Source: Paragordius varius (Eukaryota > Animalia > Nematomorpha). Taken from it: DNA of 64,000 nucleotides. Position numbers and translations under genes: made by a program. Position 1 is the stretch's first letter; each line of letters opens with the position of its first letter. The stretch spans positions 7,874,001 through 7,938,000 of the forward strand of contig OZ176054.1 of NCBI GenBank assembly GCA_964247055.1, given 5' to 3'. Shown here one piece after another: positions 1 to 64,000 of this stretch. The notes under the pieces are model-generated. The model saw only the letters and a list, made by a program, of their open reading frames with translations, ran no database searches and was not told where the DNA came from.

Positions 1-2466
1 CAGTGCATCCATAGCCTTTATGGCATCTTGAACATTGCAATGTTTCTGTACACTTTCTTCGTTGACTCTCATGAATGGATTAATTTCCTTTTCAAGACCA
101 ATGGTTGAAGGAACAGTCGGTTCCTGTTCCCCCCTTAATTTTTTGTACGTCGATAATTGTTTCACAATCATTTCATTGTGTGGTTCAACATGCAAACCAT
201 ACTTTAAATTACTTACCGAATATTCATGTCCACAAAACACTTGCTATAAAAATATAAAGAATATAAATGTATATCGATTAATAAAATAATTGAATTATAT
301 TGGAAAATGATTTTAAAATAATAATATTTAAATAGGAGAGTTGATTTAAAAGGGGCATTGGGATAACTAAATAAAAACAAAGTAAAAACACACACTTATA
401 GTGTGGTTAATTGTTATACTTTTCGAAAATTATGAGGGATCCTAAACACTTAAGATTTATAAAATATATTACCAATTATTAAATTACAGTCAGAAAAAGT
501 AAGCATTCATTTGAAAAGTGTTCCACTTTTTTAAAAATTGCACATATAATCTTGTAAAAATTTAAAATTATTACAGCTTTTATCTTTTTAAAAAAATATT
601 ATACAAATACTGTTTTATCGGGCAGTTTACCCAAAACTTCAACAAGCGCTTTATACATCTGTTGTGCTGTTCCTTCAAAAAAGCGTCCACAACCACCGAT
701 AAAAAGTGTATCACCTACATATATATTAAAATGCTTTTAATCTTTGAATGATATAACTAACCATAGAAAATATGGTACTGGAATGATAAACTTGATTTAA
801 CAAATCATAGTCCTAATATTTTCATTATATTAAAAATTGTGAAATAAGTTTCAGGGCTTTAAACTAAACAAAAAGGGATCAAGTTGTTATATAAACTGGT
901 TACCGCTTTAAAACTAATTTGTGTTGCGTAAAAAATCGTCTCAATAAACATCATAATACGAATATATTATACATCTGCAAAGTCTTATTATCTGCTTAAA
1001 TAAAATCATTTGCAAATACAAAAAAGATGAGAAATGTATACCAGTGAAAACAGAGGGTGTTGAGCCATCTTTTAAGTAATAACAAATGTGGCCCGAAGTG
1101 TGACAAGGTGTGAAAAGGCATTCAAATTCCAATTTATCCAAATGCAATTTGTCACCTTGCTTGACTTTATCCGTTAGCTGGTTTACTCGATCATCTCCAC
1201 CATAAATTTTTGCATTGGGATATAACTTAATCATTTCATCATTTCCACCGGCGTGATCCCTATAAATATATAGATGTATATCTAGTGTGTACATTTATAT
1301 GGTAGCCAATTAATACTATTGTTGGCAATACAGTAGCGTGTGTTATTAAACAAATTTTATTCATAATCAAAAACAAATTTAAGTTGTAAAGAGGGAAGCA
1401 ATTAATTGTTTGATTCCGAACGTTTATTATATTTTAGCCATATGTTACTGTATTGCCAATTAGCAAATATGAATGTGCATACTGTATTTATTATCTATAT
1501 ATAAATATATAAAACAGTTAAGGCCCCCCTCTCATATTAATCCCGGTTGGAAATAAATATAATATGAGATAATGCGCGCCTCATGACCATATTTGGGCTA
1601 ACAAACAAATTTTTTTTGCTTATTTTATAATTAATATTTATTTTTTAATAACTATACGAATATATATGTATAAATATATATATATATATACTATTGTTTA
1701 ATTTTTTATTTTTTATTAGCTTATTCTAGTAAAAAAGGTATCCATTTAAAAAAAGTTATAACTCAACAAAAATCAAAAAAGTGCCATAAGCAAAATCTAA
1801 TTACTTAATAAACGCCGTTTATTTTAAAAAGCGTATCAGTAGGTCATTATAGAAGGGGTCCACTTGAATAAAATTTGTATTTGGAATAGAATATATTTTT
1901 TGTTTTACTATATTTTCAATTTTTTCGTGTTTCTTAGGCAAAATTTGATTTAACTCTTAAATAAAATAGGTTAAAAATATTTAAAAAAATACTATTAAGC
2001 CAAACTTTGCTATTAATTTGTGCAAACATTTAAGTCTTTTTTATCTAAATCTCATAGGTATTATTTTATTATGATGGTTCAAAATTCTATTATAAATTTA
2101 TGATTTTACATACCCTGAGCTTAAACAAAAAACTCGAGTAACTTAAAATAAACTGTAACCAATGGTGGTGAGTTGTTAATATTCCAGATAATTTTAGTTT
2201 TCTGTCATTTAGTGTGGCTTGAACCAATGTAGGATCTACAGGATCCACAACGAACGCGTTGTGTGAATCATTCGGGTTTATAATATACATAAAATTATCC
2301 TCCAAAGCAGGGAGCACTTGAACAGAATATTGATCATAATTAAATATTTTTAGATTAGAGTGTTTCATCCTGAGGAATTTACCTAATATAATTTTAATGC
2401 AATATATTTACTAAATTTGTATCGAATGTAGAGATTAACCAAATTGGAGGCCAAATATTTGTGCAT
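1..2466 (-). CDS. HAGH: Hydroxyacylglutathione hydrolase (glyoxalase II); multi-exon, C-terminus runs off the window start
   Basis: Spliced translation gives [17 protein letters not shown]|[36 protein letters not shown] and [19 protein letters not shown]. An in-frame upstream ATG at 2466 joins via a 31-nt intron to the second ATG at 2368. Confidence 0.96.
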
Positions 2467-2497
2467 TCACTAAGTTAAATTTTTAAATTTTTTGACC

Positions 2498-2996
2498 ATG
2501 CTGAATGGTGAAAATACATTTATTTTAATTAAAGACATCAAATCTGGTCTTAAAAACTTAAACGTTAAGTTTATTGTTTTAGAGTCAAGTAAAATATGAT
2601 AAATATTAAGTTGGTAAACCTATTGTTACGAAAGACTCTCACTTTGTTAGGACGTTTCGGGTAGCTGATAAATCGGGCAGTATAAATATTTCCGTATGGG
2701 ATGAACCCGGTGAACTTTTACAAGGTGGTGACATTGTAATTTTAAGAAAAGGGTAATAGCGATTTAAATAAAAATATGCTTATTTTAATACCGCATTAAA
2801 AAAATAAACTTATAATATCTTATGTAGATATACTTCTATTTGGAAGGGATGTTTGACGCTTTACGTTGGAAAGGGTGGGGAAATAGCCAAAGTTGGAGAG
2901 TATTATTTTTTTATAAATAGTAGATTTTCTATGGTTTTTTCCGAACTCCCAAATATGAGTGAATTTCATCCAGAGCTTCTTAACAAACCTGTATAA
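2498..2996 (+). CDS. NABP2: SOSS complex subunit B (NABP1/NABP2-type OB-fold ssDNA-binding protein), 125 aa
   Basis: [60 protein letters not shown]. Introns at 2589-2610 (22 nt), 2753-2827 and 2900-2923 (24 nt). The NABP1 versus NABP2 paralogue label cannot be resolved. Confidence 0.92.
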
Positions 2997-62434: not shown

Positions 62435-62517
62435 AATTTAATCACATGATATGCATAGATTAGAGTGCGGAAAACACATGCCAGAAAAATTGGTGTAGAT
62501 TTTTATCTATATTTGTC

Positions 62518-64000
62518 ATGTACAATCGCGAAGTCGTTCAAAAAGATCTTAATGAATTAAACCAAAAATTGGTGGAGACAAATGCTGAAGTATCATATAT
62601 ATTTAAAGTTATTAGTTAAAATCATTATATGGGCATAAAGAGGAAGAAGAAAATACTGTAAATGTAGAAAAAATTGAGTTTAAAGCTGAAAAACTTAACA
62701 TAATTAAAAACGTAAGTACTCATTTGGAAAATATGGCAAAAGTATTTTTGAATATTAAAGTTTTTAGATTTTCAAGCCGATTGAAATAGAAATCGATGAT
62801 TTATTAACTAAAAAATATCATAACACCTATCAATTTATTTTGGAGTATATGGATGGCTTAATGTAACATTATTTTTTACAATATTAGATCTCGTTTTAGA
62901 TCAAGCATGATTATTAAAAAATACAATGTTACGATTGACACTATTGTTCAAATGGCTGCAATAAATGAGAAAATAAATTTTTTGATGCCCAATTCAAATT
63001 TGCACTCCTATATTTTTATGGTTTTAAATGCATGGATTAACAATTTTCTAACAATTTTGGCTGAGTAAAAAGTATATAAAATGTAGAGAAATTTATGCGT
63101 TATTAAAACTTCTAAAATACCCAAATTTTGCGGCCTCGTCTCTGGGTAAGTCTAGGTATATGATTAATAAACAATTTAATAAAAAACGTAAAAATTATAA
63201 AATTTGAATTAAAAACTTCATTGCTTTATTAAGCCTCCCCTTAAATTTTTTTGCCATAAAAAATTTAAATTTTACATATTATTTTTACTAGATAGAACCG
63301 AAACCATTTGTTTCATTTGGAACCGTCTTGAGACCAACAAAATTTAAAATTAAACCAAAATCATGACCATTTGACCAAAACATGGGCAAAACTAAATTAT
63401 TTTTGACCAATTTTTATGGAACCGACTAAAAATTTTGTGTGAAACTGTTATTATAAAAATTGCTCTGATTTTTCACATCTATAGGCCTTTTTTAAATAGG
63501 CTTTGTTTCAAACAACTTTTTCCCAAATATGATTATAAATTTATATCAAAATTGCTCTGTTTATTTCTGTATAAAAATTGTAAAAATTATAATATACATA
63601 TTTTTCCCGAAAATTAAAATAACTGTTTTGATTGGTCATAATTTATTTTATTATACATTAGCTGACCAAAGATTTGATCATGTGTTAACCAAAAATCAAC
63701 AAACTCAACTAATTGGATTGTTTGGTACTTTGCTGGAAATTCCCTTTATGTAATATATACCATTTGCACTTCAAGAGTGTGTTTGAATTCAAGTTGGTCC
63801 TTTGATTTTTTTTGTTTTGTTTTTAACTTTTATTCAAATTTATATTATTCATCTATTTTATCATTTTTAACTTATTTTCTATTATTTAACATAAATTTTA
63901 AATCAATATTAACCAATTCAGAAACCGTATATCTTCAATAATTTCTTAAAAATTATTTTAGATATTTATAAAATTTTAACAAATTGAAAAACATATAAGG
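62518..64000 (+). CDS. RINT1: Probable RAD50-interacting protein 1 (RINT1/TIP20); runs off the window end
   Basis: An open reading is maintained across four tiny GT-AG introns (26, 26, 25, 22 nt). An N-terminal coiled coil is followed by a HL..KPIE..Y..I..+MAAI..W..FL..L.EEI..LL..LKYP pattern recalled from RINT1. The gene is certain; its identity is from memory of the family. Confidence 0.6.

Follow-up and report, generated by a model that had tools for sequence, protein, structure and literature searches.

A stretch of nematomorph DNA of 64,000 nucleotides (nt), G000:C5:7874001-7938000, contains 24 segments of only 22-30 nt that start with GT, end with AG, and interrupt nine protein-coding genes. 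This stretch, called the window below, belongs to an assembly of 110.6 Mb in 44 contigs. Judged from the sequence, the segments are very probably genuine U2-type spliceosomal introns with a hard floor at 22 nt, which would be removed by a standard U2-type spliceosome as a class of minimal introns that has shrunk to its physical limit. An initial annotation of the window had already described introns of this size next to introns of kilobase length and had attributed them to a modified spliceosome. The introns were found again; the proposed modification has no counterpart in the parts of the splicing machinery that were surveyed in this genome.

Two size classes of introns

In total, 47 introns were measured in the window. 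The tiny ones have lengths of 22 nt (five introns), 23 nt (three), 24 nt (four), 25 nt (four), 26 nt (five), and 27, 29, and 30 nt (one each), which means that 23 of them (22-29 nt) lie below 30 nt and one lies exactly there. Two of the four 24-nt introns are only probable, as their length is a multiple of three and they contain no in-frame stop codon. The other 23 introns range from 61 to 2,886 nt (61, 66, 71, 75, 84, 100, 112, 121, 131, 150, 178, 198, 314, 327, 367, 370, 524, 636, 819, 900, 1,362, 1,507, and 2,886 nt) and often share a gene with tiny ones. None of the 47 measures 31-60 nt, and the tiny introns therefore form a separate size class. A small number of LMBR1, WDR4, and ISCU junctions are ambiguous, and one ambiguous 32-nt candidate stands beside the 47. 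An intron of 31 nt, which the initial annotation had listed, was not found, the nearest cases being the WDR4 introns of 29 and 30 nt and this 32-nt candidate. The two size classes that it had proposed are otherwise recovered, as are the lengths and GT-AG ends of the four tiny introns for which it had given positions (2589-2610, 49490-49511, 49614-49635, and 46092-46114).

GT and AG bound each of the 24 tiny segments, while the chance of finding such a pair at fixed positions is about 0.0016. The tiny introns lie nearer to the 5' ends of their genes than shuffling within genes predicts (P = 0.0003, seven fully modelled genes), and in eight of the ten genes whose first intron could be determined, that intron is tiny. 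A homology-free test was also performed on all segments of 15-60 nt that, once removed, bring together two open frames of 30 or more codons each, with GT-AG compared against the 255 other boundary pairs. With stricter flanks, the GT-AG ratio at 20-30 nt climbed from 1.15 to 1.89, and it was about 1.02 at 31-60 nt. This signal is weak and noisy because the true exons beside tiny introns often comprise only 11-35 codons, and it was not used as evidence.

Tiny introns in conserved genes

All homology searches were done exon by exon, and several short exons gave no match in the per-exon Pfam searches. In UBE2N (plus strand), exon 1 encodes 10 residues, and exon 2 begins, after an intron of 22 nt (49490-49511), at residue 11 of the human UBE2N chain 1j7d_B. 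The exons around intron 2 (49614-49635, 22 nt) correspond to residues 11-44 and 45-92 of that chain, and those around intron 3 (49781-49806, 26 nt) to residues 45-92 and 94-139, residue 93 being encoded by a split codon. Exons 2-4 are also collinear on the Pfam family UQ_con (positions 3-40, 40-87, and 89-132), and exon 3 differs very little from the human protein. Intron 4 (49948-50125, 178 nt, GT-AG) leads from ...ETEAIKT to the terminal 12 residues and the stop codon. A whole-genome search for an intron-free processed copy of UBE2N returned only paralogues with at most 57% identity.

For SLC35D (plus strand), one exon was used to fetch full-length homologues, after which each exon was aligned singly to the homologue P0255. 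Intron 1 (26863-26885, 23 nt) separates P0255 residues 13-42 from 44-54, with residue 43 as a split codon; intron 2 (26920-26946, 27 nt) separates 44-54 from 55-83; intron 3 (27034-27056, 23 nt) separates 55-83 from 84-105; intron 4 (27125-27148, 24 nt) separates 84-105 from 107-129, with residue 106 split; and intron 5 (27221-27246, 26 nt) separates 107-129 from 131-152, with residue 130 split. The last range was extrapolated by four residues from an exon 6 alignment covering 135-152. Since the numbering skips only split codons, five consecutive introns of 23, 27, 23, 24, and 26 nt part exons down to 34 nt in length. Introns 6-8 of the same gene are longer (27316-27951, 28055-28204, and 28298-28495, with 636, 150, and 198 nt), and their exons are collinear with P0255 as well.

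NABP/SOSS-B (plus strand) starts with a phase 1 GT-AG intron of 22 nt (2589-2610), whose flanking exons align to residues 4-26 and 27-71 of the SOSS-B1 chain 5d8f_A with one additional loop residue. It was claimed in the initial annotation that the removal of such segments restores conserved proteins with no residue missing, which holds for the unbroken UBE2N and SLC35D proteins; NABP differs from its homologue by this one extra loop residue. Intron 2 of NABP (2753-2827, 75 nt, GT-AG) follows an exon that ends in ...VILRK. A third intron is probable at 2900-2923 (24 nt, GT-AG), where an AT-rich stretch, a multiple of three in length and free of in-frame stops, was recognized by eye. Its removal appears to improve the match (around KVGE...) to the human sequence.

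As an independent check, the whole genome was searched for the E2-enzyme family. Other E2 genes were found in which exon matches lie about 25 nt apart and profile positions are contiguous. The UBE2D orthologue at C1:7335163-7335730 (L025) spans 568 bp and consists of six exons of 24-140 nt, separated by introns of 24, 24, 26, 25, and 25 nt, all five with GT-AG ends. Its coding sequence of 444 nt gives a protein equal in length to human UBE2D2, and exons 4, 5, and 6 correspond to residues 41-66, 67-101, and 103-147 of the UBE2D2 chain 1ur6_A. In a second E2 gene, introns of 24 and 26 nt are followed by one of about 1.4 kb, which brings the tiny introns in these two E2 genes outside the window to seven. 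Further E2-gene introns measure about 60, 88, 173, 178, and 494 nt, and none of them 31-59 nt.

The remaining window genes show the same type of junction. LMBR1 (plus strand) has five tiny GT-AG introns, at 38901-38922 (22 nt, ...AIRENI to ICLCFFIFFYLL), 39236-39259 (24 nt, ...NWLNSSLIY to SVWNYIFLLSNCCLF), 39364-39389 (26 nt, ...SIGFFNYKK to NFINRLYETLL), 39622-39646 (25 nt, ...CISLLGAITLL to TCIPLGFSKTF), and 40588-40612 (25 nt, ...YPFAMLLLFILT to NLTLFNNIF), in line with the several tiny introns that had been announced for this gene and for SLC35D. LMBR1 intron 2 is ambiguous and measures 63, 72, or 99 nt. In IMMP2L (minus strand), the GT-AG introns 1 (46360-46381, 22 nt, ...AKVEGSSMK to PYFNPDENL) and 3 (46092-46114, 23 nt, ...IATENEYI to RTPFYKKLIVKIPKGHCWVEGDN) flank an intron 2 of 66 nt (46181-46246, GT-AG, ...KGDIIAF to VSPFNPKQKLIKR), and both exons around intron 3 match Pfam Peptidase_S26. 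WDR4 (minus strand) has GT-AG introns of 29 nt (55537-55565, ...ECNFDR to GPAVKSRVLLGHISMLT) and 30 nt (55451-55480, ...HISMLTDI to ALSLDKKFLITCDRDEK).

DDX39/UAP56 (minus strand) begins with a GT-AG intron of 26 nt (16269-16294), between ...GFEHPSE and VQHECIPQ. The exon after it matches the Pfam family DEAD starting at position 2, and the exon before it has no Pfam match. The exons downstream of the tiny intron have collinear Pfam DEAD and Helicase_C coordinates, and the six remaining introns, within 13977-16140, measure 61 nt (16080-16140), 370 nt (15427-15796), 524 nt (14784-15307), 71 nt (14581-14651), 112 nt (14359-14470), and 84 nt (14130-14213). PSMD10 (gankyrin, minus strand) combines two tiny GT-AG introns, intron 1 at 26539-26563 (25 nt, ...LLTQKDN to DGRNLLHWATSKG) and intron 2 at 26408-26433 (26 nt, or 29 nt by an alternative donor, ...LNEPDE(V) to TGWTPLMIASSAG), with an intron 3 of 2,886 nt (23372-26257, GT-AG junction) and an intron 4 of 819 nt (22383-23201, GT-AG, ...NNQGNTP to LHLACEEHRDD).

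In NDUFB10 (plus strand), a GT-AG intron of 25 nt (11843-11867) connects ...FQYRVDK to EVDSIIVNLLQKRRAHC across a change of frame, and intron 3 (12008-13514, 1,507 nt, GT-AG) connects ...NFFVK to YGDIGIRSSARYAY. Together with PSMD10 intron 3, this agrees with the kilobase introns that the initial annotation had placed in the same genes. A further candidate at 11680-11703 (24 nt, a multiple of three, stop-free) is probable and has the gtaaaata...ttag form of the confirmed tiny introns, but homology around it is too weak to decide between intron and coding sequence; a word search with NDUFB10 exon 1 for full-length or transcript-derived relatives gave no match. If 2900-2923 and 11680-11703 are introns, their retention would silently add eight residues, and detection based on open reading frames (ORFs) would miss such cases.

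Splice signals

The interiors of the 24 tiny introns consist of 38% A, 51% T, 4% G, and 7% C. Sixteen of the 24 have A at position 3 and seven have T there; position -3 is occupied by T in 16 introns, and no other position is conserved. The 5' signal is thus GTA or GTT and the 3' signal mostly TAG, and these donor and acceptor types are common to tiny and longer introns. The donors gtaaaa, gttaat, gtttgc, and gttggt, which had been quoted as degenerate, are located at 2589, 49490, 27125, and 27221. Neither a distinct polypyrimidine tract nor a fixed branch motif was detected in the 24 tiny introns, as had been stated before, and their signals are minimal. In this small sample, counting from the 5' end, A is mildly raised at positions 15-18 (in 11-14 of the 24 introns) and G is absent at positions 15-17, without forming a motif. 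The last 20 nt of the longer introns are slightly richer in T (53% vs 40% overall). A final exon G before the donor is found in 13 of 19 longer introns vs 7 of 24 tiny ones (P = 0.015), and the two classes may therefore depend on pairing with U1 to different degrees.

U12-type introns were considered and rejected for the tiny class, as none of the 24 begins with (G or A)TATCCTT; this type is also marked by a TCCTTAAC branch site. The 26-nt LMBR1 intron at 39364-39389 starts with GTATATCC, which is out of register for a U12-type donor. With its GTATATCCTTT start and TTTAACAG end it contains boxes that loosely resemble a U12-type donor and branch site, in an intron that is far too short, and the likeness is probably a coincidence.

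Splicing machinery of this genome

Full-length small nuclear RNAs (snRNAs) were found for U2 (177.7 bits), U1 (124.3 bits), U6 (114.4 bits), U4 (107.4 bits), U5 (91.3 bits), and U6atac (66.3 bits), all far over the Rfam thresholds. In the alignments, the donor-pairing 5' end of U1 (ACUUACCUG) is intact, as are the GUAGUA branch-binding stretch of U2, the ACAGAGA and AGC elements of U6, and loop I of U5. A model of the U2AF large subunit has collinear exon matches on contig 8, where the RRM1 exon of U2AF65 matches the human U2AF65 structure PDB 2g4b (E = 6.5e-29). SF1 is recognized by the SF1-HH family with 74.9 bits, where the cut-off is 29.3, and by a match to PDB 4fxx (E = 3.7e-20). The survey for losses found these snRNAs with intact functional motifs, and SF1 and U2AF65 in conserved form. 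With canonical snRNAs and conserved SF1 and U2AF65, nothing points to a lost or remodelled early recognition machinery. The modified spliceosome inferred in the initial annotation is supported neither by these results nor by the normal U2 and U2AF published for myxozoans with introns of this size (PMC13644364).

The U6atac gene lies at G000:C2:4857045-4857187 (L014) and has an intact AAGGAGAGA box. Its presence suggests that this nematomorph has probably kept a minor spliceosome, in contrast to nematodes, which are said to have lost theirs.

Long introns and a dispersed repeat

PSMD10 intron 3 contains a repeat of about 350 bp (23400-23750) that is dispersed through the genome. Its scored copies number at least 40, with 89-95% identity and matches on both strands, and there are about 4,000 first-look candidates genome-wide. 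Inverted tandem arrays of a 21-nt unit are present at its two ends (23401-23481 and 23651-23732), and the repeat looks like a miniature inverted-repeat element. It lies 28 nt from the acceptor of intron 3, and the rest of the intron is mostly unique. The description of the long introns as filled with transposable elements is thus borne out only in part, by one high-copy element in this intron. Insertions of this kind may be a simple route from short to long introns.

An ordinary spliceosome and its alternatives

The tiny introns are most likely handled by a compositionally ordinary spliceosome, which would recognize the two ends of the intron across the intron itself (intron definition). The minimal signals would be a GT followed by A or T at the 5' end and usually a T before the 3' AG, and the interior, with about 89% A+T, would probably supply the branch adenosine by its position rather than by a motif. 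Recognition across the intron appears to be the natural reading, and the branch point of the tiny introns is presumably chosen in this way. The longer introns, with the same types of splice sites, would be the usual long tail, at least one of them probably enlarged by the insertion of a mobile element. Several observations weigh against this explanation. The removal of the tiny segments from messenger RNA (mRNA) is argued from protein conservation only. The branch-site signal amounts to the weak rise in A at positions 15-18, and the final exon G before the donor is unequally distributed between the two classes. The survey of the machinery covered only few splicing proteins, so that subtle changes elsewhere are possible, and a quick genome search for the U12 snRNA gave no match among the 42 candidates scored out of about 10,000.

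An alternative with a low probability is that two distinct splicing modes coexist, in which a modified spliceosome or dedicated factors measure the length of tiny introns (for example, without U1 or U2AF) and the standard route serves the long ones. In a variant that we consider similarly improbable, the tiny introns would be a separate animal class, spliced on a length- or position-based route that is tied to transcript 5' ends and depends little on U1 pairing or U2AF. The sharp gap in length between 30 and 61 nt, the clustering of tiny introns toward 5' ends, and the rarer G before their donors all favor such a division, and 22 nt is seemingly too short for the U1 and U2 particles to sit side by side. 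However, every functional motif of the snRNAs is canonical, the genome has conserved SF1 and U2AF65, and both classes use the same donor and acceptor types. A sharp short-intron mode with a long tail is moreover the usual eukaryotic pattern and is common without two mechanisms; in the nematomorph this mode has the extreme value of about 22-26 nt. For other lineages with introns of 15-27 nt, a conventional spliceosome has been reported (PMC13644364).

It is far less probable still that the segments are not introns at all but assembly artefacts, lesions of pseudogenes, products of a ciliate-like excision of somatic DNA, or sites of translational bypass. Many of them have the form GTA...TAG and thereby carry TA at both ends, like the eliminated sequences of ciliates. 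When one TA is kept, as in ciliate-type elimination, the removed length changes by 2 nt, and frames that are restored by GT-AG removal would therefore break; the frames are restored only by exact removal of GT...AG, and this candidate was rejected. Assembly artefacts and pseudogenes were rejected as well, since the flanking exons are intact and highly conserved and GT...AG stands exactly where the alignment to the homologue breaks, in nine genes of the window and in further genes outside it. The lengths are also tightly clustered, unlike random indels. Somewhat unlikely, though clearly less so than the foregoing alternatives, is that a minority of the calls has been mis-modelled, with 2900-2923, 11680-11703, and the ambiguous LMBR1 or WDR4 junctions being coding sequence or using other splice sites. 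Both 24-nt candidates lie inside ORFs and add just eight residues if kept, the NDUFB10 homology is inconclusive, and LMBR1 intron 2 has three options. On the other hand, both candidates share the AT-rich GTA...TAG form of the confirmed cases, and the NABP candidate is presumably favored by the better match to the human protein after its removal.

Other features of the window

The G+C content is 26-30% throughout the window, and tRNA and Rfam searches of the window gave no match. On its two strands, the window encodes HAGH, NABP/SOSS-B, a trypsin-like protease, NDUFB10, DDX39/UAP56, PSMD10, SLC35D, a single-exon ORF resembling a G-protein-coupled receptor (GPCR), LMBR1, IMMP2L, UBE2N, WDR4, RER1, and ISCU. 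The GPCR-like gene (31818-33212, minus strand) is an uninterrupted ORF of 465 codons with seven-transmembrane-like hydrophobic stretches, and it has no intron, unlike its intron-rich neighbours. RER1 (55891-56619, minus strand) is a single exon with an N-terminal extension of about 50 residues. Its best match is Gordionus sp. m RMFG-2023, with 60% identity over 96% of the query (E = 1.5e-86), and the runner-up has E = 3e-64, which identifies the source of the window as a nematomorph distinct from Gordionus sp. m RMFG-2023. The extension is apparently common to the Gordionus protein, because that alignment spans nearly the whole query; the remaining matches cover 63-88%.

Related ORF fragments recur on both strands, between and inside genes (9848-10027, 16517-16726, 17965-18147, 48717-49043, 50467-50715, and 56639-57370). 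They have peptide motifs such as GPNLNLCFYP and LDLNGSTGFP in common and resemble copies from one or two families of dispersed mobile elements.

Comparison with known systems

Introns below 30 nt were long thought to be absent from animals. Among 51 genomes, animal introns of this size were reported only in myxobolid Myxozoa and in Dicyema (Hadjez et al. 2026, PMC13644364); the list of tiny-intron lineages in the initial annotation, with dicyemids, ciliates, and nucleomorphs, omits the Myxozoa. Nematomorpha are not mentioned in the main text of that study, which predicts further animal lineages with ultra-short introns (PMC13644364). The Gordionus genome preprint gives a G+C content of 26.93% and does not contain the word "intron". 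No description of tiny introns in hairworms was found in the literature, although a 2023 paper on nematomorph genomes in Current Biology could hold a mention. The nematomorph would represent a third, independent lineage, and an ecdysozoan one that stands beside the well-studied nematodes. As a practical consequence, gene finders and read aligners with minimum intron lengths would be expected to break these genes, and broken gene models could exaggerate the loss of universal genes that is reported for Nematomorpha and contribute to the low BUSCO scores of this phylum.

In Caenorhabditis elegans, a member of the sister phylum Nematoda, the mode of minimal introns lies at roughly 47 nt. The nematomorph resembles this type in the combination of a short mode with a broad tail in the same genes, the presumed recognition across the intron, the weak branch consensus, and the T-rich 3' ends. 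It differs in that its mode is about half as long and lies under the 30 nt that were long taken as the animal minimum.

Outside of animals, Paramecium has introns of about 25 nt and the Bigelowiella nucleomorph has introns of 18-21 nt. In ciliates, stop-free introns whose length is a multiple of three are depleted. The nematomorph has in common with them a narrow spread of lengths close to a physical floor, interiors rich in A and T, and a conventional core spliceosome, whereas those organisms are unicellular and virtually all of their introns are tiny. Even shorter introns of 15-16 nt are known in Stentor (cited in PMC13644364).

Dicyema japonicum has introns with a mean of about 26 bp (PMC6736024), and splice logos for it are available (PMC13644364). 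Like the nematomorph, it is a parasitic animal in which conserved genes contain GT-AG introns below 30 nt and the splice motifs are reduced. In Dicyema, however, almost every intron is tiny and the genome is a reduced one, whereas kilobase introns bearing repeats coexist with tiny ones in the nematomorph genome of 110.6 Mb. As tiny and kilobase introns occur in the same transcripts, unlike in Dicyema, their recognition can be compared within single genes.

The myxobolids with ultra-short introns are Henneguya salminicola, Thelohanellus kitauei, and Myxobolus rasmusseni (PMC13644364). It was reported that their introns of 22-27 nt are accompanied by a normal U2 snRNA and U2AF, with no sign of a remodelled early recognition machinery, and that myxozoan and Dicyema introns have reduced signals with a weak run of A at a fixed distance (PMC13644364). 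The nematomorph shares with them GT-AG introns of about 22-27 nt in a parasitic animal and a normal U2 snRNA and U2AF. A 5' signal of GT plus A, little beyond AG at the 3' end, the lack of a clear polypyrimidine tract, a weak enrichment of A, and a tendency of short introns to neighbour other short introns are common to both as well. On the other hand, the Myxobolidae are cnidarians and the nematomorph is an ecdysozoan, and the different phylum argues for an independent origin. In the window, tiny introns account for only about half of the total (24 of 47), so that the window median does not fall below 30 nt, and the 5' bias within genes that is seen here is unreported in myxobolids. The recurrence of a floor at about 22 nt across independent lineages may point to a steric limit that is common to the animal spliceosome.

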